Part shown: positions 1 to 64,000 of the stretch, one piece after another | How positions within the stretch are numbered: position 1 is the first letter of the stretch | How the letters are laid out: every line of letters starts with the position of its first letter | Sequence record: PQ471515.1 | Strand: one strand, 5' to 3' | Length of the DNA: 64,000 nucleotides | Program-made: the position numbers and the translations under genes | Notes under the pieces: generated by a model | Database searches by the model: none | Told to the model about the DNA's origin: nothing | What the model saw: the letters and a program-made list of their open reading frames with translations, nothing else

Positions 1-9
1 ATTGTTAAA

Positions 10-405
10 ATGGTGAACTATGTATTAAAAAACAACACATGGTCACTGCATGATGTACAATTAGAAGATATTGGTGAAGTTAGAGTATTTTGCTATGATG
101 GCGATTTGAACGAAACCACTGATTTGAGTAAATGTTTTAATATTTTTCTTGGTTATGAAATCAATAATCATTTTTATTCATTTGATGTGTATTTTGAACG
201 AGTTAAAATCAGAATTGCTAATGTAAATAGTGATTATTATGACACTAGAATTGAATTGAATTTTGACGATATTGATACTGAAGAAAAATTCTTTCAGTAC
301 AATCTCGTAAACGATCTAAATGGATTGACATTTGAGGACATTAAAGCTATACTTAAAGTTCAAAGATTGATTCCAGAAGAGGTTCTAAATCCCTTTAATG
401 ACTAG
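10..405 (+). CDS. Hypothetical protein, dispersed 'EE-FQ' paralog family
   Basis: C-terminal TEEKFFQYNLVND motif shared with 8 other ORFs in the window. Confidence 0.7.
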   Translation: MVNYVLKNNTWSLHDVQLEDIGEVRVFCYDGDLNETTDLSKCFNIFLGYEINNHFYSFDVYFERVKIRIANVNSDYYDTRIELNFDDIDTEEKFFQYNLVNDLNGLTFEDIKAILKVQRLIPEEVLNPFND

Positions 406-757
406 TTTAATAACTCGTATAATGCAAGATGTTCGTAAGAATCTTCATACTGGTAATTTTGATGATCCTAACATAAAAATATTATGTTATGATGTATTCA
501 CACTGGTACATCCATCAGAATCTAATAATTTATACATAGCATATACTTCTCCTAATATTTTGTATCAATTTGATTTATATAGTACAATGGCTAAGATAAC
601 ATTAGATGTTTCTAAGGAGCCAATTTTTATAGCAGTACGTGATTTTGAGTACACAGAAGAGTCATTATTCCAGTACTCAATGATAAATGACATTGGTGAC
701 TTGACATTAGAAGAGATAAATGTTATAGTTGGTATGTGTCGTTTGATTAATCCATAA
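398..757 (+). CDS. Hypothetical protein, EE-FQ family
   Basis: TEESLFQYSMIND motif; overlaps end of upstream paralog. Confidence 0.7.
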   Translation: MTSLITRIMQDVRKNLHTGNFDDPNIKILCYDVFTLVHPSESNNLYIAYTSPNILYQFDLYSTMAKITLDVSKEPIFIAVRDFEYTEESLFQYSMINDIGDLTLEEINVIVGMCRLINP

Positions 758-770
758 CTCGGAGCTTAAT

Positions 771-962
771 ATGTTTTTGAATTTGTTATGCTTATTTGGT
801 CGTACATTGGTTCTTGCTATTATTCATACACCTGGTATTCGTAATTATGTTTCTTATGAATTTAAGAAAAATTACCACAACAATACTGAAGTTCGTGCAA
901 CTAAGATGTGCAAAGACTTCAATGGAGATGTTCCACCATTCAAGAAGTACGAGGATGAATAA
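771..962 (+). CDS. Hypothetical protein
   Basis: GGAG SD upstream; coupled to next ORF. Confidence 0.55.
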   Translation: MFLNLLCLFGRTLVLAIIHTPGIRNYVSYEFKKNYHNNTEVRATKMCKDFNGDVPPFKKYEDE

Positions 963-1246
963 TGGAATTTATTGTTGCACCTGATGAACTAAAAACATTC
1001 ACGTTCCGAGACAATAACAATTATCCTTATACAAATCATTCATTGAATTCATTGCATGTTATATCAATCATTGCATCTGAATACAGAGACAATCCATGTA
1101 TTGATTTTAAAACCACTGATGGTGAATATACATGGGTAGTTCCGAACGATAAATACAGTTATCAGGGTGCAGTGGAGATCCGCGACTCGATTCTAAAGCA
1201 AATCGAAGATGGACATACTCATCCTAAACTAAACATTCAGTACTGA
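962..1246 (+). CDS. Hypothetical protein
   Basis: TAATG stop/start coupling. Confidence 0.65.
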   Translation: MEFIVAPDELKTFTFRDNNNYPYTNHSLNSLHVISIIASEYRDNPCIDFKTTDGEYTWVVPNDKYSYQGAVEIRDSILKQIEDGHTHPKLNIQY

Positions 1247-1406
1247 AATCGTTTAACCGGATAGCTTCTAGTCGGTACTGAATTCCTCCTTTTGTCTAGA
1301 AGCTATCACTCTTTTAAAGTATAATGATATCACCCTCATGGTTCATTATATTCATTACCCTCTAACAGTATCTTTTTTATTCCTCTTTGATACTGTATTT
1401 TAGAAG

Positions 1407-1436
1407 TTGACATTTTTACTTCTACTGTGTTATACT
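1407..1436 (+). promoter_or_regulatory. sigma70-type early promoter
   Basis: TTGACA-18-TATACT with TGn extended -10. Confidence 0.7.
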
Positions 1437-1486
1437 TAAGGCTGATTCATTATGAATCGGCCTTTTTTCTTGTGGGGATTAATGTA

Positions 1487-1903
1487 ATGAATAAAGAAGT
1501 TATTAGTTTAATTGATGAGTATATCAACCAAACATATCGTTTGATATTTTTAAATGAATTTGAGTCCAGAACAACGTATTATTCTGGTGAATATGAGATA
1601 ATGACTGGATCATTTCTTAACGGATACATGGAGTTTTTAGAACAAAGCGATAATGTTTTCATTTCCATATCTGAAAAACATGGTGATGATTATGTTATTG
1701 ATGTATGGCCTAATAAAGTAGAGATTGACACTACAAAGAAAATTGTAATTGATGTGGATGAATCGTTGTATGATTTAACTGAAGATATGTACATGCAACT
1801 AAATTTCGTTTACGATCTAACTAACATAAGTTATTCTAATCTAAGTAAATTATTTTATATTTCTGGTGTACTACATAATAACGTACAACAAAATAAAGGA
1901 TAA
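1487..1903 (+). CDS. Hypothetical protein, EE-FQ family
   Basis: LTEDMYMQLNFVYDL motif; start moved to ATG 1487 because the ORF-track start lies inside the promoter. Confidence 0.65.
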   Translation: MNKEVISLIDEYINQTYRLIFLNEFESRTTYYSGEYEIMTGSFLNGYMEFLEQSDNVFISISEKHGDDYVIDVWPNKVEIDTTKKIVIDVDESLYDLTEDMYMQLNFVYDLTNISYSNLSKLFYISGVLHNNVQQNKG

Positions 1904-1911
1904 ACATTTAA

Positions 1912-2316
1912 ATGTTGAAAATTCCACCACATACACTATCTATGCTAATTGAAAATGGTGTAATATTTTCTGAAGGGTGTAGTTCATTCTATACATGTGA
2001 CGTGGACCCGTACACATTTGAATACCGTTCATTTAAAAATACATTGAGTGTTCCATGTGAAGCTTCTGACAACATTGTACTTGTCGTTTCGTTCTATGGT
2101 GTACCAAACTTCTTCATTGATATATATTATGATTCTTTTAAGATACAAACATACGATCATTTTCTTGGTGAAGTGCTCTTGCAAATGCAGATTGAACATG
2201 TTACTATAGATGAAGATATGTTCTTTCAGCTATCTACTGTATACGATATGTGTGGGTTGACAGTTGACAACATTAATGGTATCTTTGAAATTGCCAGAAC
2301 CCTACGAGGAAGATGA
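1912..2316 (+). CDS. Hypothetical protein, EE-FQ family
   Basis: IDEDMFFQLSTVYDM motif; tandem paralog of upstream ORF. Confidence 0.7.
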   Translation: MLKIPPHTLSMLIENGVIFSEGCSSFYTCDVDPYTFEYRSFKNTLSVPCEASDNIVLVVSFYGVPNFFIDIYYDSFKIQTYDHFLGEVLLQMQIEHVTIDEDMFFQLSTVYDMCGLTVDNINGIFEIARTLRGR

Positions 2317-2317
2317 T

Positions 2318-2734
2318 ATGGTCAAAATTTTAAGTGACAATGCGGTTGATATTGTCATTGATGTACTTGAAAACAGTAATACATTTGAGAAGAAACACAG
2401 TACTGTATACTTCGGTGAAGATTGTTGGCTAAGTTATACATCTAATAATTCGTTTATAATTCGTGTTGAAAAGGGTGATGTTGGATTAACGATACATGCC
2501 TCCTATACTAAAACTGACAAACAAATAACTGTCATCGCTAACAAGCCAAGTACATCCGATTTCTGGGATAGTATTGATGATTGTGAACACTACACGTCAA
2601 CATTCTATGATACAGAAGAAGAACATTTCATGGATAGTACTGTTAAAGAATTATCTGTTCCATTTAAACTTATGAAAGCAGCAAGAGATTTTATTTTAAA
2701 ATACAAAAAAACAGGAGTTTATGATGCAATTTAA
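2318..2734 (+). CDS. Hypothetical protein, EE-FQ family (divergent)
   Basis: GAGGA SD at 2306-2310; TEEEHFMDSTV motif. Confidence 0.6.
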   Translation: MVKILSDNAVDIVIDVLENSNTFEKKHSTVYFGEDCWLSYTSNNSFIIRVEKGDVGLTIHASYTKTDKQITVIANKPSTSDFWDSIDDCEHYTSTFYDTEEEHFMDSTVKELSVPFKLMKAARDFILKYKKTGVYDAI

Positions 2735-3170
2735 TGGTAAGGTTTCTAAAGTAGGTTTAGTTTTTGAAAATTGTGAGTTCATTGAGATTGATGTAAAGAA
2801 TGTTTTATGGATGCATATTGCTGACGAGAAAACTCTGTGTAGTCGTTTTTCCAACGGTCTAACTATTAGTACTGGTATTGGTGAGTTCGGTATTGCATTA
2901 CGTAGTGACACACCATCTGATTTCATGGATAACTCAACACTGTTAGAACGTTTAAAAATGCGTGATGTTACACACGTTTATCTATATGATACTAACGGTG
3001 TTGAACAGCGTTATGTAGTTGAATGGGCTAATTATAACCTTAGTGATCAGTATTCAGTAAACCAGCGTGTACAACTCACCCCTGGTGGTAATATTGTGTT
3101 TGTTAGTTCAACTGGTAAATTAATCAGTGTAGATGATGCAAATATTGATTTATTCACTTCATATAACTAA
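2721..3170 (+). CDS. Hypothetical protein
   Basis: 149 aa ORF in co-directional run. Confidence 0.65.
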   Translation: MMQFNGKVSKVGLVFENCEFIEIDVKNVLWMHIADEKTLCSRFSNGLTISTGIGEFGIALRSDTPSDFMDNSTLLERLKMRDVTHVYLYDTNGVEQRYVVEWANYNLSDQYSVNQRVQLTPGGNIVFVSSTGKLISVDDANIDLFTSYN

Positions 3171-3181
3171 TACGAACTACT

Positions 3182-3601
3182 ATGAAAACAATCAAAACAC
3201 ATTTCAAAGATACATGGACAGAAGTAAGTACTGGTAATATTCAAGATATTGTATACAGTACTGAAACTATTCATGTCTATGATGAAGAGACAGCAGCCGA
3301 GCAGTTAAAGGTATTGCATCGTAGTGTAGGTGAACACACCGAGTATGGTGTCAAACATACTCGTGAATTGGTAAGTACTGATCATATTGACACACGTACT
3401 GTAAATCTATCAAAAGAAGAAATGTTTGATTTTATTCTAAACAATACTTTAACAATTCAACCAGATGGTTCACTATACAGTAAAACAGATGGTACACAAG
3501 TTCGTAAAAAGTACAATGTGACCATCAATGATACGGTGATGTCTGGATATGATTTAGTTGATGCAATCAACGAGTACGTTTCTATGCAGAGGTTGAAATG
3601 A
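3182..3601 (+). CDS. Hypothetical protein
   Basis: 139 aa ORF; ATGA coupling to next gene. Confidence 0.65.
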   Translation: MKTIKTHFKDTWTEVSTGNIQDIVYSTETIHVYDEETAAEQLKVLHRSVGEHTEYGVKHTRELVSTDHIDTRTVNLSKEEMFDFILNNTLTIQPDGSLYSKTDGTQVRKKYNVTINDTVMSGYDLVDAINEYVSMQRLK

Positions 3602-3963
3602 TTAATCTGATATATTTTACAATTATTTGTTGCATTACTATTGTACTTTGTCGTCTAATTCATGTATACTCATATCATAAAGCGTTGAGAATCGAACAAG
3701 AGATTTACAACGAAAACCGTGAGCCAGAGCCAGAGAAGCTACCCCGCTCACCATATGCATTGAAGCGTGAGATGCATTCGGAGAGTAAGAAGTGGGGTTA
3801 TGCAATAACCAAGCATGGTTATATCTACACTGCTGCAAATGGCTATTTTCAAATTCACCATGATCTTTCAGTTGCGATTGGAATTTTATGGGAAATGGAG
3901 GATATAGGTGGTTATGAGCGTACTAAATTTCCAAACTTACAAAATGATCCAGGAACTTCATGA
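3598..3963 (+). CDS. Hypothetical membrane-anchored protein
   Basis: N-terminal hydrophobic helix. Confidence 0.6.
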   Translation: MINLIYFTIICCITIVLCRLIHVYSYHKALRIEQEIYNENREPEPEKLPRSPYALKREMHSESKKWGYAITKHGYIYTAANGYFQIHHDLSVAIGILWEMEDIGGYERTKFPNLQNDPGTS

Positions 3964-4117
3964 AGAACATGATATAATTGTAGATGTAGAAAAGAAGGAA
4001 GTTGTTATGAAGAAGCAAGCATACCGCATCTTAGACAACTTCTATCTTAAGGCATTTATAATGAAGTTCTGTGCAGACGAGCACTTAACAGGACGTGTTA
4101 TACGCAAGGAGTCGTAG
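3944..4117 (+). CDS. Small hypothetical protein
   Basis: Fills gap between coupled ORFs; start uncertain. Confidence 0.45.
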   Translation: MIQELHEEHDIIVDVEKKEVVMKKQAYRILDNFYLKAFIMKFCADEHLTGRVIRKES

Positions 4118-4459
4118 ATGGACATGAGTTCAATAATTCAGTACTTGAGCGAGAATTTTGTCAAAATCATTTCACGTGGTGGTATGATTGTGCATCCTGA
4201 AACTGAAGATATGTATATCATTCGTTTTGATACAAATTCTTATGATCAAGTACTTGTTGTTTCGAAATTGGTAGGTTATAATGAAGTCGTTCAGTTCTGC
4301 TGTACCGAGTTCGGTATCTATATTAAAGATGCAGAAACCAATGAGATTTCACATTATTTTTATCACACACTGATGGGTACTAAAGATTTTGGATTGAAAT
4401 TCAATGATTTAGTACAATGTCACTATATGTTTAAAACATACCCAGCATCTGGGAAATAA
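4118..4459 (+). CDS. Hypothetical protein
   Basis: AAGGAG SD upstream. Confidence 0.65.
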   Translation: MDMSSIIQYLSENFVKIISRGGMIVHPETEDMYIIRFDTNSYDQVLVVSKLVGYNEVVQFCCTEFGIYIKDAETNEISHYFYHTLMGTKDFGLKFNDLVQCHYMFKTYPASGK

Positions 4460-4470
4460 GGAGTAACAAT

Positions 4471-5286
4471 ATGAGCAACATTTTCTTCAAAACCATTTCC
4501 TTCAAAAAAGAATCTTACTCTTACGCTTATGTAGATGGTAAAGTACTCAATATCGTTCTAGATGGTGTTGATGTGCCTGTTCAATTTACCAGTCATCAAG
4601 AAGCGATTGAGGGTGCTCAAGAGCTTAACAGCTTACTAAATGGCATTGAGAAGAAACCTGAAGTTAAATCTGACCTTGATTTATTGGTTGACAAAATTAA
4701 AAGTGGTGAACTATTATCAATTCTAGACCAGTGTAATGAAAAATTACGTGGTGTTGTTGGTGATGTACGTACTACAGTTCAAGATCGTCTACTTGAGCAA
4801 GCATTCAAAGAAGTTACTAAGAAAACTGAAGAACGTGTTGAAGGTATGATTAAAAACATTGATGACGTTCTCACTCATATGTTCACCAAGCCATACGAAT
4901 CAAGTACTGATTCTGAAGAGAAACAAGAAGAACCAGTAGAACGCACCAAGCCATCTATTGTTACTAAAGTTAAACATAGTTTTGGTTCACTGGATGATGT
5001 ATTTGGCTTTACAAATGTACGTGTTAGTACTGATGAAAAGCCAGAAGTTGATGAAATGCTCATTGGTGACATGACAACTGGTCAACTCAAAAAAGAGATT
5101 GATACCTTTGTTAATGAACTAATTAGTTCTGAACGTGCTGAAAATATGTTTAGCAGTATTTCAGCAAACTTCGGTAAAGAAGCAACTGAGCAAGCAGTAC
5201 AGGCATTCAAAGATTTGATTTACACTGTTGCAATTGCTAATCCAGAACAAACACTGGAAGAAGTTCTACGTAAAAACTTCAAATAA
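4471..5286 (+). CDS. Hypothetical acidic helical/coiled-coil protein
   Basis: AAGGAG SD; 271 aa E/K-rich; ends at bidirectional terminator. Confidence 0.7.
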   Translation: MSNIFFKTISFKKESYSYAYVDGKVLNIVLDGVDVPVQFTSHQEAIEGAQELNSLLNGIEKKPEVKSDLDLLVDKIKSGELLSILDQCNEKLRGVVGDVRTTVQDRLLEQAFKEVTKKTEERVEGMIKNIDDVLTHMFTKPYESSTDSEEKQEEPVERTKPSIVTKVKHSFGSLDDVFGFTNVRVSTDEKPEVDEMLIGDMTTGQLKKEIDTFVNELISSERAENMFSSISANFGKEATEQAVQAFKDLIYTVAIANPEQTLEEVLRKNFK

Positions 5287-5300
5287 GATATAGATAAAAG

Positions 5301-5327
5301 AAAAGCCACTACAATGTAGTGGCTTTT
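5301..5327. terminator. Bidirectional intrinsic terminator
   Basis: AAAAGCCACTAC-aat-GTAGTGGCTTTT between convergent genes. Confidence 0.85.
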
Positions 5328-5330
5328 TTG

Positions 5331-6488
5331 TTATGCGTTATAACCAACAATGACTACAGTACAGCCAAATGGTTCAACAACTTTTAATACAACATTATCA
5401 TCTGCATCGAGTTCAACTTCACTTAGAACAACATGATTGTCTTCAGCATAGACTTGAACTTGTGGGAGGATTTTACCATGTTCACTAGCAGGAATTGACA
5501 GTGTATACATGGAATCACCATCAACTGCCCAATCACTATCGGCATACGTATTGTGATATGGAGTGGTGTGTAAGGTTTTACCAATAATACTCAATGAGAT
5601 TGGAGCGTCATCGGTTTGGTACACAGTGATATTACCGCTAGGATCTACAATGAGGTCTACTCCAATTTGGAATAAATCACCACTGTATGCTTGTAGAGCA
5701 AGATACTCACCACGCTCATGAACAGTAGCTGGTACAGTTGCCATATACATGCCATCGGGCGTGTACTCAAACTGCGATAGAAGTACTGAAGTAACGAAGT
5801 CAATATCTTCGCCGCTTTCTAGTATATCAAATTCAATAGTTTTGGTATTATATATGTCAGAAGTGAGGATGATGGTTCCTTTACCGGATTGAGTAATTGG
5901 ATCAACTGGAATACTAAAAACATCATCAATTATTTCAGTTGTGAAGTACTCGGTTCCGTCAGGAAGTATAACGGTAATACGCATTCCAGTTGTATTAATG
6001 ACTGAACCTGCGTTGAATAGGCGACCACCTACCAAATCATCACCTACGAACGTTGGGAACATAAGGATGTTGTCTATATCTCTATCTATAATCCCGCATT
6101 CAGGGGTGTACATATTATATAGTGTTTGTGAACTACCTAGAATTGTTTTGTGCAAAAGAAACTTATAAACAAACCCAGTAGGATCTGATTCAAGTTTAGC
6201 ATCTGAGTATCCTCTTACGAAAAAAGAGTTCTTTCTTATTTCACTTAGGATTTGGTCATTAGTTTTGTTGTAGTTTAATTGATATCCTTGTATATCCTTT
6301 GTTGTAATTTGTACTTTACGATAAATTACATTACTTACAGGATCAAGTAAATCATATAATCTATGGCTTCTCTGACGATAGATTCGAACATTTTTGAGTT
6401 TAGTCCCATCGTTGAGAATTGCACCATCGACTACATAACCACATTCACCGAACTTATATCGTCCAGCAGCAGCAATCGATCTTGACAT
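5331..6488 (-). CDS. Putative virion structural protein
   Basis: 385 aa; GGAGG SD; preceded by the array-type TAAATA-N3-TATAAT motif; two C-terminal beta-rich repeats (VPATVHERG / IPASEHGK). Confidence 0.5.
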   Translation of the reverse strand: MSRSIAAAGRYKFGECGYVVDGAILNDGTKLKNVRIYRQRSHRLYDLLDPVSNVIYRKVQITTKDIQGYQLNYNKTNDQILSEIRKNSFFVRGYSDAKLESDPTGFVYKFLLHKTILGSSQTLYNMYTPECGIIDRDIDNILMFPTFVGDDLVGGRLFNAGSVINTTGMRITVILPDGTEYFTTEIIDDVFSIPVDPITQSGKGTIILTSDIYNTKTIEFDILESGEDIDFVTSVLLSQFEYTPDGMYMATVPATVHERGEYLALQAYSGDLFQIGVDLIVDPSGNITVYQTDDAPISLSIIGKTLHTTPYHNTYADSDWAVDGDSMYTLSIPASEHGKILPQVQVYAEDNHVVLSEVELDADDNVVLKVVEPFGCTVVIVGYNA

Positions 6489-6510
6489 TCATCCCTCCAT
6501 TGGTATAATT

Positions 6511-6525
6511 ATTATAATGTATTTA
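6511..6525 (-). promoter_or_regulatory. Putative late promoter motif
   Basis: Minus strand TAAATA-CAT-TATAAT. Confidence 0.6.
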
Positions 6526-6548
6526 TTATGGATAGGTAAAAAAGCACC

Positions 6549-6577
6549 TTGACTGAGTTGTGTTTTTGACGTATACT
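6549..6577 (+). promoter_or_regulatory. sigma70-type early promoter
   Basis: TTGACT-17-TATACT. Confidence 0.7.
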
Positions 6578-6604
6578 TAAATGGAATATCAATAAGGGGA
6601 TTTT

Positions 6605-7189
6605 ATGAGTGTTGTAGAAAAGCGATTAGTACTGAAAAATGGCAAAATGACTGTTAAGCTATACAAAGATGAAGCTGATTCTTTTATGGCTAAAGCAATT
6701 GAGAAATCTGAACGATATAAGATTCTTGCACCTGCAAGTAAATCGCCGTATGGATTTAATCACGCTCACAGTCATTTTGTAGGGATGGTATGTGAACATG
6801 CATCATTTGTACTTTTTAATGAAATTGAAAACTATTCAGGTATTGCACTTAACATTGATCCAGCGTTCCAAAGTGATGGTCGTGATGGTGAATGTGATAT
6901 CAAAGTAAACAACTTAAGAATTGAAGTGAAAGGCATCAAGTACAAATCGTGGACCGACTTTGGACCATGTGTTAGTACTCGACAGTTAAAAAATATACAG
7001 AAAAAAGCTGACGTTATTCTGTGGGTATTGTATAATGAGAAAAAGCAAGAATTCACATTTGAGGGATTCAACTATGTAAAAGACATTAGTTCGATTCCAG
7101 TTGTGCTAACAGGTGTACCAGGGCGACCGATGATTGAAAATCACCCAGTACTGAGTATTATTAAACCACTTCAGGAGTTACCATTATGA
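6605..7189 (+). CDS. PD-(D/E)xK restriction-endonuclease-like protein
   Basis: E...DGRDGECDIKVNNLRIEVK matches the D-x(n)-E-x-K catalytic signature. Confidence 0.5.
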   Translation: MSVVEKRLVLKNGKMTVKLYKDEADSFMAKAIEKSERYKILAPASKSPYGFNHAHSHFVGMVCEHASFVLFNEIENYSGIALNIDPAFQSDGRDGECDIKVNNLRIEVKGIKYKSWTDFGPCVSTRQLKNIQKKADVILWVLYNEKKQEFTFEGFNYVKDISSIPVVLTGVPGRPMIENHPVLSIIKPLQELPL

Positions 7190-7413
7190 TTACTGCCACT
7201 GTATATCAAGATATTAATGAAGAATTTAATTCTAAAATTGCATTTTTATCCTTTCCCGTATTGCCAGCTATTGGTGCTACGTTGAATCTTACAATCTGTG
7301 GCTTTGAAAAATACTATGAAGTACTAGATATTGAGTACTGTGCAGATGTTTATTCATGCAACAGTGAGATTGCTATTCCGGTGCAAATCGACATTATAGT
7401 AAAAGAGGTTTGA
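7186..7413 (+). CDS. Hypothetical protein
   Basis: ATGA coupling to upstream gene. Confidence 0.6.
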   Translation: MITATVYQDINEEFNSKIAFLSFPVLPAIGATLNLTICGFEKYYEVLDIEYCADVYSCNSEIAIPVQIDIIVKEV

Positions 7414-7415
7414 TT

Positions 7416-7874
7416 ATGTTTAAACACTTTCTAGTAATCACTGCTGTTGTATTCAGTACTTCCTGCTTTGTAGCACCAGTACATGCGGAAGACCAGCGTC
7501 AAACAATCAAGACGATTGGAACAGGGAAAGCCCAACCAAAACGTACTGCTGAAGAATACATGCCTGAGATGCGTGAACGTTACCGCCAGCAATACCGTGA
7601 AAAACATGCTAATGATAAGCCTATCAAAAAGCATAAATGGAATGTAGTCAAATCGCCATCGTTTTGTGCTGGGTATGCTAAGGTTAAGGATGAACAGCAC
7701 AACAAGCAGTACTATAAAGATATGTACACATTCTATGATTCGAGGATCTCGGATGATGACATGATGGCTGCTAAGGTTGATAAAGAAGAATTTCTTCAGG
7801 GTTATGACATGACCGATGATGACAAGATCATGGAATGTGTTGAAGTATATGAAAAATACAGAGGTTTTGAATGA
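7416..7874 (+). CDS. Putative exported protein
   Basis: Signal peptide ending PVHA-ED; GAGG SD. Confidence 0.6.
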   Translation: MFKHFLVITAVVFSTSCFVAPVHAEDQRQTIKTIGTGKAQPKRTAEEYMPEMRERYRQQYREKHANDKPIKKHKWNVVKSPSFCAGYAKVKDEQHNKQYYKDMYTFYDSRISDDDMMAAKVDKEEFLQGYDMTDDDKIMECVEVYEKYRGFE

Positions 7875-8314
7875 CACTTTTGCTGATTCTAGGTTTATTA
7901 GTGTCATATTTCATTTTTCTTAACATCTTCTCTGATGCATCACATTTTGCATATGCTTCAGCTATTGCAAAACACGAAGGGATAAAGAAGTATATTCCTG
8001 CATTGTTATTCTCATATATGTACCATCCAAGGTACTTTACACTAGGTGTGTTTGACAAGTATGTATACGACGAAAAAGCACTCAATGAAATTGAATACTT
8101 TGTAAGAACTCATGCTAATAACAATCCAAAATCATTAATTAACTTTACTGATAATCGTAAACGTGTTAGTATTAGAACTGACTTGTATCCTACCAGTCAC
8201 TTTCATCTAGGCGATTGTAGTGTGTACAGGGTTAGATACGAAAACTTACTGTTACCACCATCACATATAAGATACATAGAAAAATACTTGTTGAAATGTG
8301 TTGACTCCAAATAG
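7871..8314 (+). CDS. Hypothetical membrane-anchored protein
   Basis: N-terminal hydrophobic helix; ATGA coupling. Confidence 0.6.
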   Translation: MTLLLILGLLVSYFIFLNIFSDASHFAYASAIAKHEGIKKYIPALLFSYMYHPRYFTLGVFDKYVYDEKALNEIEYFVRTHANNNPKSLINFTDNRKRVSIRTDLYPTSHFHLGDCSVYRVRYENLLLPPSHIRYIEKYLLKCVDSK

Positions 8315-8330
8315 TAAATGGCAGTATAAT
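8301..8330 (+). promoter_or_regulatory. sigma70-type early promoter
   Basis: TTGACT-18-TATAAT; -35 lies in last codons of upstream gene. Confidence 0.7.
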
Positions 8331-8367
8331 AGCTTCGTACCGCAATAACTGACAAGAGGATTTAACG

Positions 8368-9670: not shown

Positions 9671-9695
9671 CGTGAGTTATTGAGTCATATATAAT
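9667..9695 (+). promoter_or_regulatory. sigma70-type early promoter
   Basis: TTGACG-17-TATAAT; upstream TGA stop is inside the -35. Confidence 0.65.
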
Positions 9696-9729
9696 TATTA
9701 CATCAAAACTGGGAAATGGTAAGGAACTT

Positions 9730-9981: not shown

Positions 9982-9987
9982 AAGTAT

Positions 9988-10741: not shown

Positions 10742-10742
10742 T

Positions 10743-54143: not shown

Positions 54144-54163
54144 AATAAAATCTCCGTAATTAA

Positions 54164-54208: not shown

Positions 54209-54216
54209 ACCTATTA

Positions 54217-55338: not shown

Positions 55339-55347
55339 GATTTTCTC

Positions 55348-56541: not shown

Positions 56542-56558
56542 ATTTCCCTCCTTTATTC

Positions 56559-56607
56559 ATTATACTATATTTAATCAAAAATAAATGCCAGTACACAGTA
56601 CTGGCAT
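56559..56607 (-). promoter_or_regulatory. Terminator + late promoter cassette
   Basis: ATGCCAGTAC/GTACTGGCAT hairpin, T-tract, TAAATA-TAG-TATAAT. Confidence 0.75.
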
Positions 56608-56611
56608 AATA

Positions 56612-57790
56612 TTATCGGTTAAATTTAAAATCTGTTATGTGTGTCCATGTATGATTTAATGGTGTACTCATTGGTGTAAAGCCAGCAGGGTCTGACAAAG
56701 CTGTACCACGTGCGTACATAAATTGATTGCCAGTACAATCCATTATAGCATAAGAACGTTTTGCTGTGCCACATTTGAACCCAACTGCACTACTTGGGGT
56801 CGGTAATACTTCAAATGTAGGTGCATTTGAACTACCACCCCCATCTTTTGTTCCAGCTATGTACAGAACTCCATTAGTATCAATGATTAAGTTAGTCCAA
56901 TATACTTGTTCTCGTCCAGCAAAAAAATATGTTAAATCACCTGGTACAAATGGTAACGTTCCTTTATATATTGTGGTATTAACATCCACTGGTGCACCAG
57001 CTACACCCCATGAACTCATATAGTTTCTCCCACTTGCGTAGAATGTAGTTCCTTTACCGTAAAGTATTAATGTTGCTAGACTTGTTCGCATTGCATTATA
57101 TTCAAACTCAGGATCATCAGTAGCGTCCTTAAAAATCTGTGTCCATGTTGTTATATTGCCAGTAGTTGTAACACCCATTTGATAATAATAATTATCACCA
57201 GTAGCATAGAATTCTTTAGGGCCAGTTTGTACAATTGCATTCCTATTAGTTAACCAAAAATCTAATGTATTAGTCTTGATCTTGGTTGGTGTGTAATTCG
57301 CCACGGTATTTCCTTTTCCGAAATAACCATTAGCGTTATTTCCATGACCCCATAAATCACCATTAGTTGTGCGTAGGAATAATGTACCAATATTGAATCC
57401 AACTTTTTCTATAGTACTTATGTCAATACCAACAGTCGTGTACTTCGTTGTAAAATCTTGAAAAGTACTCCAATAATTAGATGAACCATTAAACATGGTT
57501 TGTTTACCAGTGTACTTCACTTTATTATCTTTAGTGATAAGTAATGTCCCCCACACTGACGCGAACATCAACTTAACATTTTCCATAACAAAGTATGGCT
57601 TACCGTATGCTGACGCGGTAGAGTTCAAACCTAATAGTTGTCCATTATTACTACAACCCCATACTTCGCCGTTATCCAAAAGCATCAACATAGTAGGTTT
57701 GCCAGATGATACATCCAAAAAGAAATCTTTTGGTGTTGGTACACCAGGTGTAATATTTCCATAATCAAACATTCTAACAAAAGGTAACAT
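56612..57790 (-). CDS. MLPF-tag protein 3, RCC1-like
   Basis: MLPFVRMFDYGN; LWGHGNNANGYFGKG, YATGDNYYYQMG. Confidence 0.75.
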   Translation of the reverse strand: MLPFVRMFDYGNITPGVPTPKDFFLDVSSGKPTMLMLLDNGEVWGCSNNGQLLGLNSTASAYGKPYFVMENVKLMFASVWGTLLITKDNKVKYTGKQTMFNGSSNYWSTFQDFTTKYTTVGIDISTIEKVGFNIGTLFLRTTNGDLWGHGNNANGYFGKGNTVANYTPTKIKTNTLDFWLTNRNAIVQTGPKEFYATGDNYYYQMGVTTTGNITTWTQIFKDATDDPEFEYNAMRTSLATLILYGKGTTFYASGRNYMSSWGVAGAPVDVNTTIYKGTLPFVPGDLTYFFAGREQVYWTNLIIDTNGVLYIAGTKDGGGSSNAPTFEVLPTPSSAVGFKCGTAKRSYAIMDCTGNQFMYARGTALSDPAGFTPMSTPLNHTWTHITDFKFNR

Positions 57791-57807
57791 ATTTCCCTCC
57801 TTTATTC

Positions 57808-57854
57808 ATTATACTATATTTAATCAAAAATAAAAGCCAGTATCAAGTACTGGC
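57808..57854 (-). promoter_or_regulatory. Terminator + late promoter cassette
   Basis: GCCAGTA/TACTGGC hairpin, T-tract, TAAATA-TAG-TATAAT. Confidence 0.75.
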
Positions 57855-57860
57855 ATCGTA

Positions 57861-58970
57861 TTACTTGGGTAATGGAATTGTGGTCCATCTATTTGCGGCA
57901 ACGTCACCTGGTACATATGTAGGACTACCACTTACAGCAATAGTTTCATTACCATCATATACAACACTGAAGTTTGTGCACGTATACAACGCTGCGGCAT
58001 CTGGATTGTAATTTTCAAGTGTTAGTGTATTGGTGAACAAATTCAATGCAGTAGTTGAGCCGTTTTTACCATATGCACCTGTAGTATATATCTTTCCTTC
58101 TGTTGTTGAGTACATATTAACATATGACCCAGATGATGATTTAGCAATTTTATCTATCTTGCTATCTATTGTTTTAGAGTTAAATTGAAATGGATATACC
58201 TGTACGTTAGTATCTAAACCATTTCCCAGTTCCCCATTTAACTGCCACCCTGTGTGGTACATTCCCGCATTTGTATATGCAAGCGTACTATACGCATTAC
58301 CACCCATTATTTTAGTGCCAGATAATTTTAAACCAAACGATGTCCACTTACCAGTTTCATTTCCTATGGAACCATAAGCACTTGTACCACACGCACGAAG
58401 CTCGCCATTTGACGTTAGAAGCACTGTATTATTAACGTTACCAAATATATCAATAACCTGATTAGTGCCATTATTCAGTACTGAAGTAAAAGTACTCTGT
58501 GAGTAAGTACTACCTGAACCAACAGAACCATTTGTGTTCATACCTCTTCCATATACAATTTTACCATCAGCACTAACATAGTGCATTGAATCAAAACCAA
58601 TGGATATCATTTTAATATCAGATATATCTGGAAATGAAGAAGTTACATCTACTCCACCTAGTGGAATTGTATTATTTCCTAAACCTAATGAGACATTAGT
58701 TCCGTGCATTATAAATTTATCTTCTTTAAAATATAAAATATTATATCCACCAGCCCATGCATTATTAACGCCATTTGTAATCAGTACCCATTTATTTTGT
58801 GTAGTAGTTCCAGTAATATTTAACTGTTGATAGTTATTGATTCCACAACCATATAGCGATCCATCACCATATAGTACATATAAATTATCATATCCTGCAA
58901 TAACTTTCTTTATTTTTTTGGGTACAGGTGCTACATTCCCATACTTTAACATTCTTCCAAAAGGTAACAT
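57861..58970 (-). CDS. MLPF-tag protein 2, RCC1-like; close paralog of 48715-49824
   Basis: MLPFGRMLKYGN; same 369 aa length and colinear sequence as protein 10. Confidence 0.8.
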   Translation of the reverse strand: MLPFGRMLKYGNVAPVPKKIKKVIAGYDNLYVLYGDGSLYGCGINNYQQLNITGTTTQNKWVLITNGVNNAWAGGYNILYFKEDKFIMHGTNVSLGLGNNTIPLGGVDVTSSFPDISDIKMISIGFDSMHYVSADGKIVYGRGMNTNGSVGSGSTYSQSTFTSVLNNGTNQVIDIFGNVNNTVLLTSNGELRACGTSAYGSIGNETGKWTSFGLKLSGTKIMGGNAYSTLAYTNAGMYHTGWQLNGELGNGLDTNVQVYPFQFNSKTIDSKIDKIAKSSSGSYVNMYSTTEGKIYTTGAYGKNGSTTALNLFTNTLTLENYNPDAAALYTCTNFSVVYDGNETIAVSGSPTYVPGDVAANRWTTIPLPK

Positions 58971-58987
58971 TATTTTCTCCTTTATTC

Positions 58988-59037
58988 ATTATACTATATT
59001 TAATACAAAAAGAAATGCCAGTACACAGTACTGGCAT
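58988..59037 (-). promoter_or_regulatory. Terminator + late promoter cassette
   Basis: ATGCCAGTAC/GTACTGGCAT hairpin, T-tract, TAAATA-TAG-TATAAT. Confidence 0.75.
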
Positions 59038-60192: not shown

Positions 60193-60208
60193 ATTCCCTC
60201 CTTTATTC

Positions 60209-60223
60209 ATTATATCATATTTA
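60209..60223 (-). promoter_or_regulatory. Putative late promoter motif at head of array
   Basis: TAAATA-TGA-TATAAT. Confidence 0.65.
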
Positions 60224-60240
60224 CCCCAAAAAGAAAACCC

Positions 60241-60269
60241 TTGACAACCTTCCAGTACTGTTGTACAAT
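60241..60269 (+). promoter_or_regulatory. sigma70-type promoter for micro-gene array
   Basis: TTGACA-17-TACAAT with CAGTACTG in the spacer; divergent from array promoter. Confidence 0.75.
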
Positions 60270-60294
60270 AGAAGGAATATAAGGAGAACTACAC

Positions 60295-60522
60295 ATGACA
60301 AATACTCTTAAGTACTACCTCAATACTCTAAATGAACTAGAGTACGCGAAGTTTCTCGCGGATAGTTCGTGGCTAATTGAGCTAAAAACACATAACAGTA
60401 CTGGATGTAACCTTATGCTGAACAATGCACTTGATACCCTTGTAGTGAGCATTTTACACAACAACATCTGCGGGGATAGAAACAAACAATTATCAAAAAT
60501 CTTAGTACTGGTAGCTCTATGA
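60295..60522 (+). CDS. Micro-gene array member (divergent)
   Basis: AAGGAG SD; MTNTLKYYL...ILVLVAL. Confidence 0.6.
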   Translation: MTNTLKYYLNTLNELEYAKFLADSSWLIELKTHNSTGCNLMLNNALDTLVVSILHNNICGDRNKQLSKILVLVAL

Positions 60523-60731
60523 ACACTATGAACATTGAACAGTACTACATTGATGCACTACCAACAAAAGGTCTACGAGAAAGCCTACTGTATACACAAA
60601 ATAATTATATAAACCTCAAACATTGTCCTAAACTCTTGAACTCGTACAGGAATAATAAAATAAGAAATGCTGTACAAGGGGTAGAAAGTATGCAATACTA
60701 TTACATCCTAACCCTTTTAATCGAGCACTAA
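60519..60731 (+). CDS. Micro-gene array member
   Basis: MNTMNIEQYYIDALP...YYILTLLIEH. Confidence 0.65.
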   Translation: MNTMNIEQYYIDALPTKGLRESLLYTQNNYINLKHCPKLLNSYRNNKIRNAVQGVESMQYYYILTLLIEH

Positions 60732-60732
60732 T

Positions 60733-60918
60733 ATGTATAAAGAATTCTACTGTAGTAAGCTGCACAAACAATACAGAGATTCATTTCCCAATGAACCTAT
60801 GGATATGAATAGTCCCTTTTATAAATTTGACTTCAGACTGGAGACACGTTATGCAATAGAACATCAATTTCCTGAAACTAAGTACTTATCTATCATGAAC
60901 CTCATCTTTAAGTTCTAA
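60733..60918 (+). CDS. Micro-gene array member
   Basis: MYKEFY...YLSIMNLIFKF. Confidence 0.65.
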   Translation: MYKEFYCSKLHKQYRDSFPNEPMDMNSPFYKFDFRLETRYAIEHQFPETKYLSIMNLIFKF

Positions 60919-60929
60919 AAGAGTACTAT

Positions 60930-61142
60930 ATGAAAACAATGAACATACACCAGTACTACTTAGATATTCTCCCTAAAGATGTACAGTTCATCCTTAAACA
61001 AGAATACAGTACTTTAAAAAACCTTAAAAGAACCGCACCGAATGCATTAATCCTGCACCAAAAAAATGTAGTTGATAATATTCTACAAGGTGTACCAGGG
61101 ACCGAGTACTTTAACATAATAAGGCTAATTACATTACCATGA
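60930..61142 (+). CDS. Micro-gene array member
   Basis: MKTMNIHQYYLDILP...YFNIIRLITLP. Confidence 0.65.
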   Translation: MKTMNIHQYYLDILPKDVQFILKQEYSTLKNLKRTAPNALILHQKNVVDNILQGVPGTEYFNIIRLITLP

Positions 61143-61324
61143 ATCATATATTATACTATTACCAAAATCTATCCGACAGGGACAAGTACACCCACAACTC
61201 CAATGTATGGTACTACAAACGCGGTAGTATAAGAGACAAACAACATTACTTCTGTATTGCTATAAAAGAAGCACTAACAACTAAGTACACGTACAGAGCA
61301 GTACTGAAACTTATTGATATGTAA
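61139..61324 (+). CDS. Micro-gene array member
   Basis: C-terminal KYTYRAVLKLIDM. Confidence 0.65.
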   Translation: MNHILYYYQNLSDRDKYTHNSNVWYYKRGSIRDKQHYFCIAIKEALTTKYTYRAVLKLIDM

Positions 61325-61334
61325 AGAGAATACT

Positions 61335-61517
61335 ATGAGCATTGAATTGTACTTAAGTAAATTACAGCCTGGCGATAGATTCATCTACAATCAGTTCTGT
61401 ATCAACTACAAGAACGGGAGCAACAAATATCGTCGAGGATACCTATATACAAGCACAAGAGATGCACAAAACGAAAAGTACACATACAGAGAAGTACTTA
61501 AACTAATCTCTATTTGA
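61335..61517 (+). CDS. Micro-gene array member
   Basis: C-terminal AQNEKYTYREVLKLISI; start moved to ATG 61335. Confidence 0.65.
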   Translation: MSIELYLSKLQPGDRFIYNQFCINYKNGSNKYRRGYLYTSTRDAQNEKYTYREVLKLISI

Positions 61518-61525
61518 GGTAATAT

Positions 61526-61711
61526 ATGAATACATTTGAGTACTATACAAATAAACTATCTATGCCTGAAAGATCTCATCTCTATGTGTGGAGAAATGCG
61601 TATAAAAGCGGCAATAAACTTATACAAAGAAATTCCCTTACAGTGTGTACAAATTTAATTAAAGCAGAGTACCGCACATATATTGAAGTACTGAAACTGA
61701 TAGCAATCTAA
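61526..61711 (+). CDS. Micro-gene array member
   Basis: MNTFEYY...YIEVLKLIAI. Confidence 0.65.
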   Translation: MNTFEYYTNKLSMPERSHLYVWRNAYKSGNKLIQRNSLTVCTNLIKAEYRTYIEVLKLIAI

Positions 61712-61719
61712 GGTACTCT

Positions 61720-61899
61720 ATGCAAGAATTCTATATCTATAAACTCCAGCACAAAGATAGATACAACTATAATAAATTCCAAAGGTACTACACAGTCGGG
61801 AACAAAAGAGATAAAAAACGTTATCTACTCTCGTGTACAGTAGAAGCACAAAACGAAAAGTACACGTACAGAGAAGTACTTAAACTAATCTCAATCTAA
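61720..61899 (+). CDS. Micro-gene array member (59 aa, not in ORF track)
   Basis: MQEFYIYKL...AQNEKYTYREVLKLISI. Confidence 0.65.
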   Translation: MQEFYIYKLQHKDRYNYNKFQRYYTVGNKRDKKRYLLSCTVEAQNEKYTYREVLKLISI

Positions 61900-61906
61900 G
61901 GTAGAC

Positions 61907-62095
61907 ATGAACACTTTTGAGTACTACTTCAATAAACTAAACCACATAGAACAAAGTATGCACCACACATTTATTCAGAACCATCAATCATCTTCACCTC
62001 TAATTAAAAACATATCGATTGAGATTATAACTAACAATGTACTGTCATCTGAACGTTATATGTATATTGATGTACTGAAACTCATCTCTATGTAA
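61907..62095 (+). CDS. Micro-gene array member
   Basis: MNTFEYY...YIDVLKLISM. Confidence 0.65.
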   Translation: MNTFEYYFNKLNHIEQSMHHTFIQNHQSSSPLIKNISIEIITNNVLSSERYMYIDVLKLISM

Positions 62096-62103
62096 GGAAT
62101 AAT

Positions 62104-62283
62104 ATGCAAGAATACTATATAGAACACATAAGCATTAAAGACCGTTTCATGTACGACACCTTCGTGAAGTACTACAACTTGGCAACTAACAGTACTAAAA
62201 ATATTAATCTCAATAGCTGCATTCATCACGCACTAACAAAAGATAATCCCTTCAGGGAAATCCTCGCACTAGCATCTGTATAA
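62104..62283 (+). CDS. Micro-gene array member (59 aa, not in ORF track)
   Basis: AAGGA SD; MQEYYIEHI...FREILALASV. Confidence 0.6.
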   Translation: MQEYYIEHISIKDRFMYDTFVKYYNLATNSTKNINLNSCIHHALTKDNPFREILALASV

Positions 62284-62294
62284 AGGAAAACCAA

Positions 62295-62954
62295 ATGAAA
62301 CTTAATGCACACAGCAAACAATACCTTAAGCACTTTAAGTACCTCAACAGTATTCAAGCAGAATCTATTACATCTGCATATACGTATCACCCAAATGTAC
62401 TAAAGAAACGAAATAAAAAGAAAAAATCCAGAAATGTTCTCGTATCTAAGAACCTCAAATCGTACTTGAAGAAAAATAATATAGCTCTTGCTTTTATTAA
62501 TATCTATAATACTGATTTAAAAGTATTGAGTACTAATACCAGCACAAAAGCACTAAAGAATGCATCTATCTATATACACATGGATAATATCCCGTGCACT
62601 ATAATTCTATCTTTCGGGAATGTATACTTCTTCGGGAATTGTAATAGCACCCATGATATCAGTACTGCACAATTCCAAATCGGAGATATGTACTGCATGG
62701 GTTCAGAAAAAATACACGATAACATGCACTTCTTCCAAAAGCAACGTACTAACGAAACTGATACAGTACTGCAATTCCTCAAAGAACTAGAACACAAAGA
62801 ATTATCCGACGAAGAAGAATTCATGTACAGTACTGTAATCGATAATCCAGGACTCTATAAAAACGCGTACAAACTAACAAAACATGTACAGGAACTTATC
62901 AGTACTGATAAGAAATTTCATCACCTCATTACGTATATTACAAACTATGTATAA
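62295..62954 (+). CDS. Hypothetical protein, EE-FQ family with basic N-terminus
   Basis: SDEEEFMYSTVIDN motif; AAGGA SD. Confidence 0.65.
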   Translation: MKLNAHSKQYLKHFKYLNSIQAESITSAYTYHPNVLKKRNKKKKSRNVLVSKNLKSYLKKNNIALAFINIYNTDLKVLSTNTSTKALKNASIYIHMDNIPCTIILSFGNVYFFGNCNSTHDISTAQFQIGDMYCMGSEKIHDNMHFFQKQRTNETDTVLQFLKELEHKELSDEEEFMYSTVIDNPGLYKNAYKLTKHVQELISTDKKFHHLITYITNYV

Positions 62955-63132
62955 AGAATACTACATAGATAAACTCCCAATGCATCTACAATACCTTGTA
63001 CCAACAGAACCATTGGGTATAGAAAAAGACTACGAAAAAGACTACTTCGTTAAGTGCACTAAATCCTCGATAGATATTGACGACTATAATCGAGTACTGT
63101 ATCACATCATTTTACTAATATATAAGTACTAA
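62947..63132 (+). CDS. Micro-gene array member
   Basis: MYKEYYIDKLP...LYHIILLIYKY; start moved to ATG 62947. Confidence 0.65.
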   Translation: MYKEYYIDKLPMHLQYLVPTEPLGIEKDYEKDYFVKCTKSSIDIDDYNRVLYHIILLIYKY

Positions 63133-63133
63133 T

Positions 63134-63313
63134 ATGCACAAACATAAAGAATTCTACTTGTCGTACCTTAATTCCGATATAGTAACATCCAATACCTTCA
63201 GTACTAAAATTATCTATAATGAATTAATGAAAGAATGTATTAAAGGTGCTATTAACCCTAAAGATACGTATGACTTGTACTATGCAGTACTAACCCTTGT
63301 TTTCACGAAATAA
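63134..63313 (+). CDS. Micro-gene array member (59 aa, not in ORF track)
   Basis: MHKHKEFYL...LYYAVLTLVFTK. Confidence 0.6.
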   Translation: MHKHKEFYLSYLNSDIVTSNTFSTKIIYNELMKECIKGAINPKDTYDLYYAVLTLVFTK

Positions 63314-63321
63314 CACATAAT

Positions 63322-63510
63322 ATGAATAACCACAAAGAATACTACATAGATAAACTCCCAATGTATCTACAGAGCCATATACCAAACGTTGCATTGGGAA
63401 TAAAAGATGACGCAAAAACAATGTTCCAAGAATGTACTAAGTACACCCTAATGTTCGAGGATAGAACATATAAACTGTACTACATCCTCGCCCTAATATT
63501 CAAGTACTAA
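63322..63510 (+). CDS. Micro-gene array member
   Basis: MNNHKEYYIDKLP...LYYILALIFKY. Confidence 0.65.
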   Translation: MNNHKEYYIDKLPMYLQSHIPNVALGIKDDAKTMFQECTKYTLMFEDRTYKLYYILALIFKY

Positions 63511-63520
63511 AGAGAACAAT

Positions 63521-63703
63521 ATGCATAAAGAATACTACACACAATTTCTCCCCAGTATATTTGAACACTACGCCAGATATAAAGTCCCCCTGGATAACGA
63601 TTTGGCAGTACTGGGATTCAATAACTGCATAGAACGAAGTATAGAAAATAGTAGTAGTTATGACCAGCTATATAACACTATCCTACTTATATTCAGGTAC
63701 TAA
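63521..63703 (+). CDS. Micro-gene array member
   Basis: MHKEYY...LYNTILLIFRY. Confidence 0.65.
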   Translation: MHKEYYTQFLPSIFEHYARYKVPLDNDLAVLGFNNCIERSIENSSSYDQLYNTILLIFRY

Positions 63704-63704
63704 T

Positions 63705-63896
63705 GTGTATAAAGAATACTACATAAAAGATTTACCACCGCACCTTCAAGGTAATCTGTTAGAAGATGAACCTCGCGGTATCAATGCACAAAACGATAAA
63801 GTGTACTTTACTATGTGCACTAAAGCATGTATACTAGATTTTGATAGCTACCATCGAGTACTGTATCATGTACTGTACCTAGCTTTCGTGTACTAA
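63705..63896 (+). CDS. Micro-gene array member
   Basis: GTG start; (M)YKEYYIKDLP...LYHVLYLAFVY. Confidence 0.6.
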   Translation: MYKEYYIKDLPPHLQGNLLEDEPRGINAQNDKVYFTMCTKACILDFDSYHRVLYHVLYLAFVY

Positions 63897-63905
63897 GAGA
63901 ACAAT

Positions 63906-64000
63906 ATGCATAAAGAATTCTACTTAAGCCATCTGGAACTAAACTCCCAAATGCTTATACCACTAAAACCAATAGATATCAAGGATAAGAAAAATACCAA
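63906..64000 (+). CDS. Micro-gene array member, truncated by window end
   Basis: MHKEFYLSHL. Confidence 0.55.
   Translation, partial: MHKEFYLSHLELNSQMLIPLKPIDIKDKKNT

Follow-up and report, generated by a model that had tools for sequence, protein, structure and literature searches.

A clade-wide excess of the palindrome AGTACT in Escherichia phage Turkey3 and its jumbo-phage relatives

The 64-kb stretch of DNA analysed here (the window, 64,000 nucleotides) is strewn with copies of one six-base palindrome, AGTACT, and raises the question of why a phage should accumulate this word and what might read it. The window corresponds at 100% identity to positions 297,209-361,208 of Escherichia phage Turkey3 (PQ471515.1, 361,208 bp) and forms the final 64 kb of that genome. 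Turkey3 is kin of 121Q and PBECO4 and belongs to Asteriusvirus, among the RaK2-like jumbo myoviruses. The initial annotation proposed that AGTACT, the ScaI/Eco255I site, is a selected mark of self DNA that recently acquired foreign genes lack. We examine this proposal in the window and, for context, in the whole Turkey3 genome reassembled from its record.

Over-representation and conservation of AGTACT

AGTACT occurs 178 times in the window (positions 1-64,000), in all reading frames and between genes, against 21.8±4.3 occurrences (maximum 33) in 100 dinucleotide-preserving shuffles, an excess of about 8-fold. By raw count it ranks first among the 4096 hexamers of the window, above every AT-only word despite its two G/C bases. 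The counts that first drew attention to the word, 25 sites in 1-10,000 and 30 in 60,241-64,000, are exact. The whole Turkey3 genome likewise holds 981 copies against 123 expected, also about 8-fold and equal to 2.7 per kb.

This excess persists when coding constraints are held fixed. Permuting codons inside each of the 121 annotated coding sequences (CDS) of the window, which leaves proteins, dipeptides and per-gene codon usage unchanged, gives 47.9±6.0 copies (maximum 67) where 151 are observed (z=17.2, the top z among hexamers). The initial annotation had staked its claim on such a control for codon and dipeptide usage and on the standing of AGTACT among hexamers, and the claim stands on both counts. 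AGT, ACT, GTA and TAC are indeed common codons in Turkey3, and the excess might be taken for an artefact of composition at the level of codons, amino acids or dinucleotides. The probability of such an artefact is nevertheless close to nil, as both shuffles contradict it, the motif itself shapes codon usage, and AGTACT is about twice as dense in the non-coding DNA of the window (27 sites, 5.0 per kb) as in its coding DNA (2.6 per kb). Within the window CDS the sites fall in frames 0, 1 and 2 in the numbers 70, 33 and 48, and each of the placements described earlier is seen: all frames, stop codons, promoter spacers and terminator stems.

The imprint of the word on coding sequence is visible genome-wide in context-dependent codon choice. 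Ser-Thr pairs are encoded AGT-ACT in 408 of 777 cases, where 118 are expected, and the Ser-Thr dipeptide is itself 1.5-fold over-represented (777 vs 526 expected). The tyrosine codon TAC is used in 79% of cases where AG precedes and T follows the codon, as opposed to 34% elsewhere, and Val-Leu pairs are encoded GTA-CTN in 51% of cases vs 20% expected. Such context dependence matches the prediction of a constraint acting at the DNA level. We also note that the phage tRNAs just upstream of the window (L008 42716-47180) include Ser(ACT), Ser(GCT), Ser(TGA) and two Thr(TGT), a set that fits the heavy load of AGT and ACT codons made by the motif.

The excess grows stepwise from GTAC through AGTAC and AGTACT to the extended form CAGTACTG. 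In the window, GTAC occurs 564 times against about 206 expected, AGTAC has z=12.9, AGTACT retains z=6.9 even conditional on its own 5-mers, and CAGTACTG accounts for 43 copies where about 0.7 are expected. The bases preferred at the flanks are C at position -1 and G at position +1, each in about 46-47% of sites. The two preferences are independent, with both bases together in 23% of sites, which is the pattern expected of two half-sites. The near-cognate words AGTACA and AGTACG are enriched too (z 4.3 and 3.7).

Comparison of Turkey3 with a 121Q-like genome (86.6% overall identity, 130 aligned AGTACT sites, 304 hexamer classes) shows that the word is also kept over time. AGTACT is unchanged at 104 of the 130 sites (80%), compared with 53.5% for other hexamers, and is the most conserved of the 304 classes; the excess conservation extends to non-coding DNA and to each reading frame. 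The six motif positions diverge by 5-7% and the flanks, position -1 included, by 12-14%, so that the conserved footprint is exactly 6 bp, two-fold symmetric and sharp-edged. Between the two genomes 26 sites have been lost and 26 gained, and this balance indicates that density is kept while individual sites turn over. Together, the synonymous shuffle, the codon-context bias, the top rank in conservation and the sharing across the clade described below bear out the core of the initial proposal and support the conclusion that AGTACT is a selected DNA-level word, neither a codon nor a dipeptide effect.

The same test, as the initial annotation had suggested, extends to related phages. The rank-1 excess recurs in TH47 and ECO103 4-12-1, in Serratia phage BF and in Klebsiella phage RaK2, with synonymous-shuffle z of about 18 in BF and 14 in RaK2. 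A complete RaK2-like genome (OU509535.1, L016) holds 945 copies of AGTACT vs 119 expected and 246 of CAGTACTG vs 3. The trait is thus common to three genera, Asteriusvirus, Eneladusvirus and Alcyoneusvirus. IMG/VR relatives recruited by their capsid protein divide sharply: all ten loci with a capsid at least 90% identical have a 3-6-fold excess of AGTACT and no GCGC at all, while all 30 loci with a capsid 63-72% identical have neither the excess nor the loss of GCGC. Both traits therefore arose together. A more distant relative carries a different word. In L060 (IMGVR_UViG_3300044959_000303, 21 kb around the capsid gene, capsid protein 65% identical), TTCGAA occurs 68 times vs 7.1 expected, in all frames and with a synonymous-shuffle z of about 9, TCGA occurs 313 times vs 72, and GCGC is depleted (3 vs 25). 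A different hyper-abundant palindrome in this lineage argues for a lineage-specific reader. In the literature searched, including a text search of the fEgEco12 and CBB genome papers, we found no report of an AGTACT excess in these phages and no published methylome of any of them.

Distribution of AGTACT and of purged palindromes along the genome

AGTACT is densest at the genome end. A density of 7-11 per kb sets in at window position 60.2 kb, runs past the record origin and ends sharply at about 22.2 kb of Turkey3. At the start of this block (window 60,200-64,000, plus strand), where small paralogous open reading frames (ORFs) form an array, 30 sites fall within 3.8 kb, or about 8 per kb. The related phage fEgEco12 has a direct terminal repeat of 20,993 bp, confirmed by digestion (PMC13070987), and homology with it indicates that the dense block spans the terminal repeat plus about 4-5 kb before it. 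The first ~1.8 kb of the repeat is without annotated ORF and carries 19 AGTACT. A 20-kb dense block in the RaK2-like genome is likewise sharp-edged. In Turkey3 22.2-27.9 kb, just inside the terminal repeat, there is no AGTACT at all and GTAC is not in excess. We further note that Chi (GCTGGTGG) is about 15-fold enriched in Turkey3 (23 + 12 copies vs ~2.3 expected), with nine co-oriented copies in the terminal repeat (Turkey3 1,983-20,994); eight co-oriented copies lie in the dense block of the RaK2-like genome (OU509535.1 35,328-48,995).

A second region is oriented. Between 30.0 and 39.1 kb of Turkey3 (30,005-39,127) the plus strand carries 49 copies of AGTACA, in all three frames, with no TGTACT and no AGTACT, and the 5-mer AGTAC occurs 54 times on the plus strand vs once on the minus strand. 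The homologous domain of the 121Q-like genome shows the same polarity (AGTACA 46 vs 0), and one protein tested there is about 56% identical between the two lineages. The RaK2-like genome is without such a domain. The proteins of the oriented domain match no Pfam family and are orphans confined to Asteriusvirus. The selected unit in this domain is thus strand-oriented, which keeps a strand-reading machine in play.

Over the core genome the density is 2.4 per kb and the gaps between sites are close to Poisson (coefficient of variation 0.93). Regular spacing or phasing can be set aside, save for a small peak at 20-23 bp that comes from two-site promoters. Position tied to gene starts or stops can likewise be set aside, as the profile is level except for a depletion at ribosome-binding sites and a slight peak past stop codons. 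Over the long ORFs of the genome, AGTACT is depleted in the 20 nt preceding start codons, and the peak lies 8-12 nt past the stop, where the 20 nt that follow it hold 28 sites vs about 13 per other bin. A longer repeat or mobile element as carrier of the word is not indicated either, since the flanks are almost without information past position -1.

Most other palindromes go the opposite way. The avoidance of short palindromes that the initial annotation cited for lytic phages is extreme in Turkey3, where 24 of the 64 six-base palindromes do not occur anywhere in the genome although each is expected 11-37 times, and two further ones occur at most twice. The absent words include GGTACC and CGTACG, both with a GTAC core. 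Among four-base words, GCGC occurs 0 times in the 361,208 bp of Turkey3 vs 359 expected and 0 times vs 227 in the RaK2-like genome. It is missing from every clade member examined (Turkey3 plus loci L013, L014, L016-L022 and L024-L035) and normal in more distant relatives, so that its absence co-occurs exactly with the AGTACT excess. This pattern suggests a lethal phage-intrinsic constraint, which might be, for example, a GCGC-directed nuclease that the phage uses on host DNA. In a 50-kb sample of E. coli, AGTACT occurs 11 times (0.22 per kb) and GCGC at 7.1 per kb. With a host poor in the one word and rich in the other, the two words separate phage from host DNA very well.

Candidate readers and competing explanations

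The reading that we favour, tentatively and at a little under an even chance, is that AGTACT is a positively selected self-mark of the density type, read by a symmetric phage-encoded factor, and the phage equivalent of HIP1, the highly iterated palindrome of cyanobacteria. The word would be read on double-stranded DNA by a two-fold-symmetric reader, possibly a binding protein that acts as a dimer or an enzyme of the restriction-modification type. The mark would act by density, labelling phage DNA (2.7 per kb) as distinct from E. coli DNA (0.2 per kb), and would be densest on the DNA exposed first, at the terminus of the genome, in the terminal repeat and in the early region. It would be paired with the complete lack of GCGC, abundant in the host at 7 per kb. 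The benefit of each site would probably lie in the protection, organisation or handling of phage DNA apart from host DNA, and the mark is also part of early promoters. Several observations weigh against this reading. The oriented 9-kb domain excludes the full palindrome, which a purely symmetric dimer does not predict, and near-Poisson spacing in the core leaves no visible positional logic. Biased gene conversion would also give conservation above background, and the link between AGTACT and GCGC is one of co-occurrence alone. A bolder version, which we consider doubtful, is a two-word code for self and non-self in RaK2-like jumbo phages, in which AGTACT would be the dense positive mark, read by a dedicated phage factor, and GCGC, purged from the phage and common in the host, the handle for destruction of host DNA. 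The positive word could be reprogrammed between lineages, the TTCGAA relative being an example, and the AGTACA-only domain beside the terminal repeat would reflect a reader that is directional near the genome end.

The initial annotation had proposed a search of the rest of the genome for a methyltransferase or DNA-binding protein. Two orphan methyltransferases conserved in the clade are candidates, as judged from their sequences. One is a predicted C5 cytosine methyltransferase of 286 aa (Turkey3 281,036-281,896; L008 31036-31896), 63-100% identical across all genera, whose nearest matches of known structure are the DNMT3A/B catalytic domains (E 1e-23). The other, annotated as hypothetical, is a putative Dam-family N6-adenine methyltransferase (63,090-63,614; L004 13090-13614) with a match to PF05869 (E 5e-32) and an NPPY motif. 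A regular-expression scan for further amino-methyltransferases, made without a full domain scan of the ~600 ORFs, returns the Dam-family ORF only. GATC is depleted to 0.52 of expectation, and the Dam-family enzyme may therefore not be a GATC methylase. In TH47, A4, UE-S1, ph0011 and JNE01 the match to the C5 gene begins only with residue 78 or falls into pieces spread over about 1.9 kb, which suggests that the gene is interrupted by an insertion.

AGTACT or its GTAC core might accordingly be the target of an orphan methyltransferase, with a dense methyl mark selected as an epigenetic self-mark or as a block to a nuclease or silencer of the host. The sharp-edged 6-bp footprint is typical of type II recognition, the parallel lineage uses another classical type II word (TTCGAA), the C5 enzyme is conserved in all genera, the Dam-family enzyme is conserved as well and, with GATC depleted, may have a different target, and HIP1 itself is reportedly methylated. 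We nonetheless consider methylation rather unlikely as the explanation, since target status alone does not account for an 8-fold excess. The C5 family is also a poor predictor of the trait: 50 viral contigs with homologues show no AGTACT excess, and ECGD1, whose C5 methyltransferase is 50% identical, avoids the word outright (0 vs 14 expected). Lost sites carry no surplus of C-to-T changes, the signature of 5-methylcytosine (5mC) deamination, with just 4 of about 28 single changes of that type. A-5mC is a substrate of McrBC, yet one relative grows on K-12. In addition, fEgEco12 DNA is cut normally by 10 restriction enzymes, a set in which ScaI is not included (PMC13070987).

A host protein that binds AGTACT could be the nucleoid-occlusion factor SlmA, whose site GTGAGTACTCAC has an AGTACT core (PMC3020112) and, like the phage word, is two-fold symmetric, in its case for a dimeric protein. 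With about 1000 sites per genome copy, the phage could act as a large sponge that titrates or recruits SlmA. SlmA requires GT followed by a purine (positions 1-3) on both sides of AGTACT (PMC3020112), and phage sites are without these flanks. AGTACT is preceded by C in 46% of phage sites and by G in 8% only, GTR flanks are below chance (32 vs 56), and the Turkey3 genome contains no full SlmA-type site. With the required flanks absent and even disfavoured, we regard this explanation as extremely improbable.

The oriented domain invites a reading in which the unit is the 5-mer AGTAC, read by strand on single-stranded or unwound DNA by a directional machine (for example a primase-helicase, a Chi-like nuclease attenuator or a translocase), the palindrome being the cheapest way to put the unit on both strands. 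The 54-to-1 bias over three frames, kept in a relative with ~56% protein identity, speaks for it, as do the enrichment of AGTACA and AGTACG and the nine co-oriented Chi copies in the terminal repeat, which indicate that end-processing enzymes shape the region. Outside that domain, however, there is little strand asymmetry, the RaK2-like genome does without such a domain, position 6 (T) is conserved as well as positions 1-5, and mere lack of need does not explain why the reverse orientation is avoided within the domain. Strand reading is on this evidence distinctly unlikely. A reading in RNA, with AGUACU as, for example, a processing or stability signal, draws on some of the same data, as a palindrome reaches mRNA from either transcribed strand, AGTACA lies on the coding strand of the oriented domain, and bin counts give about twice as many AGTACA as TGTACT in the plus-strand gene region at 40-145 kb. 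There is, however, no rationale in RNA for a perfect palindrome flanked symmetrically by C and G, density peaks in non-coding DNA including the ~1.8-kb ORF-free genome terminus, and the codon shuffle shows both near-cognate orientations similarly enriched, all of which makes this alternative highly improbable.

The excess could also be neutral if a mutation or repair bias, such as very-short-patch-type (VSP) repair or biased gene conversion, keeps making AGTACT. Such a drive mimics conservation too, and the balance of gain and loss that maintains density and the near-Poisson spacing are in keeping with it. A VSP-type drive would deplete neighbouring words. None of the 18 one-mismatch neighbours of AGTACT is depleted (z -2.0 to +4.3), which argues against repair of the Dcm/Vsr type, and no Vsr-like gene lies beside the C5 methyltransferase, whose six flanking ORFs have no Pfam match. 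Moreover, the 9-kb domain retains 49 AGTACA unconverted, proteins are bent too (Ser-Thr 1.5-fold), and the motif stands at fixed positions in promoters, so that we rate a neutral origin as very unlikely.

By analogy with known systems, the AGTACT excess is best filed as a phage-borne variant of the HIP1 kind. HIP1 (GCGATCGC) is the highly iterated palindrome of cyanobacteria, for which no function has been established (PMC5861425; Xu, Lawrence and Durand 2018). Both are short palindromes many-fold over-represented, at roughly one per gene, that occur inside and between ORFs and in all frames and have lineage-specific variants. In both, conservation across genomes above background points to selection over replenishment, and a missing motif can flag foreign genes. 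Indeed, AGTACT shows what is expected of a word of this type: a many-fold excess that survives the controls, presence in all frames and between ORFs, and conservation above that of control words. The two differ in that AGTACT belongs to a clade of lytic jumbo phages and not to cellular genomes, is 6 bp and AT-rich where HIP1 is 8 bp and GC-rich, clusters at the genome terminus and in the terminal repeat, forms part of promoters and terminators, and is coupled with total loss of GCGC and with one domain of oriented half-palindromes. HIP1 is in addition reportedly methylated, and methylation of AGTACT is hypothetical. Chi, the DNA uptake sequences (DUS/USS) and the FtsK-orienting polar sequences (KOPS) are, similarly, genome-wide selected density signals that mark self DNA for a dedicated machine, but each is asymmetric and depends on its orientation, and the machines that read them are known. 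AGTACT reads the same on both strands, and a Chi-like orientation is confined to its variant in a single 9-kb domain beyond the window. The avoidance of palindromes by lytic phages is matched by the purging of 24 of 64 six-base palindromes and of GCGC; AGTACT in Turkey3 runs the other way, 8-fold over, whereas ECGD1 avoids it.

Hyper-abundant palindromes have remained a puzzle ever since HIP1 was described, and a coliphage clade offers a far more tractable system, with laboratory strains as cultivable hosts, a 360-kb genome and only two methyltransferase candidates. It also provides natural contrasts: some inserts are free of the motif, one domain is oriented, sister lineages do not share the trait and another lineage uses a different word. 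A lytic phage can thus favour one restriction-type palindrome while purging nearly all others, which bears on the reading of phage genome signatures, on spotting recent gene transfer within phages and on the design or recoding of therapeutic jumbo phages.

Motif-free ORFs, promoters and terminators

Two gaps in the distribution of AGTACT, 32,421-33,909 and 34,019-36,660, are exactly as first described, and the two sites that separate them (33,909 and 34,019) lie in a native ORF of 243 bp (33,814-34,056, plus strand, phrog_34150). Three plus-strand ORFs fall in these gaps and hold no AGTACT, with GC of 24-29.5% and GTAC at chance level. The ORF at 32,446-33,744 (GC 29.5%, one GTAC) is clearly an HNH-type endonuclease and resembles homing endonucleases (phrog_559/681, E 1e-78). 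Two further ORFs occupy 34,043-36,506 (GC 29.4% and 24.4%). That at 34,043-35,458 resembles homing endonuclease gene (HEG)-type proteins of the CapR/DUF723/T5orf172 kind by language-model features only, and that at 35,448-36,506 has been assigned no family, so that, of the ORFs first described as HEG-like, only the one at 32,446-33,744 clearly belongs to a nuclease family. The segment 34,047-36,503 is missing from TH47 and ECO103 4-12-1 and is thus an insertion. This absence, the low GC and the chance level of GTAC agree with the earlier view of these ORFs as recent foreign DNA. The wider suggestion that homing-endonuclease genes lack the word holds for the window ORFs and fails as a rule: four other HEG-like genes elsewhere in Turkey3 contain between one and five AGTACT each, at normal density or higher, and a paralogue of the 32,446 ORF has five in 1.1 kb. 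Absence of the motif therefore marks recent arrival and not a class of gene. We also note internal repeats of ~200 bp in the HNH-type ORF (window 32,365-33,419), seen as staggered matches to one ~620-bp segment of a relative.

AGTACT stands at fixed positions of predicted sigma-70-type promoters. AGTACTTGCAA overlaps the putative -35 element in 15 copies and AGTACTGTATAAT abuts the -10 element in 15 plus-strand copies genome-wide. Some of these promoters hold both, 20 bp apart, and AGTACT pairs at 20-23 bp are over-represented. Predicted plus-strand examples in the window include 14,627-14,654 (TTGACA, 16-nt spacer, TATAAT, with AGTACTG abutting the -10) and two of the same class, AGTACTG followed by TATAAT, at 18,938-18,965 and 29,804-29,831. 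A promoter-like stretch at 37,356-37,387 has two sites 16 bp apart, one over the -35 (TTGAC-AGTACT) and one over the -10 region, and a predicted promoter at 60,241-60,269 (TTGACA, 17 nt, TACAAT) has CAGTACTG in its spacer. TACTGTATA in the AGTACTGTATAAT promoters recalls a LexA box; by eye, no second half-site stands at the right spacing, and this identity was rejected.

On the minus strand, about ten intrinsic-terminator hairpins between RCC1-like paralogues (45,249-59,037) have stems GCCAGTAC...GTACTGGC that contain AGTACT, for example at 59,037-59,015, 56,607-56,585, 47,496-47,478 and 45,267-45,249. Terminator-like AGTACT sites number 20 vs 6.9±2.3 in shuffles. The paralogues form a minus-strand array of about 18 RCC1/HERC1-like genes (window 39,890-60,192) whose copy number varies among relatives. 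Behind every gene lies a near-identical ~100-bp intergenic unit that comprises the terminator and an AT-rich promoter-like stretch. Other words are avoided in the window: TATTTA and TAAATA are strongly depleted on the coding strand of the CDS (synonymous-shuffle z -8.0 and -5.7) and resemble the ATAAATA late-promoter motif described in the relative CBB (PMC5259590).

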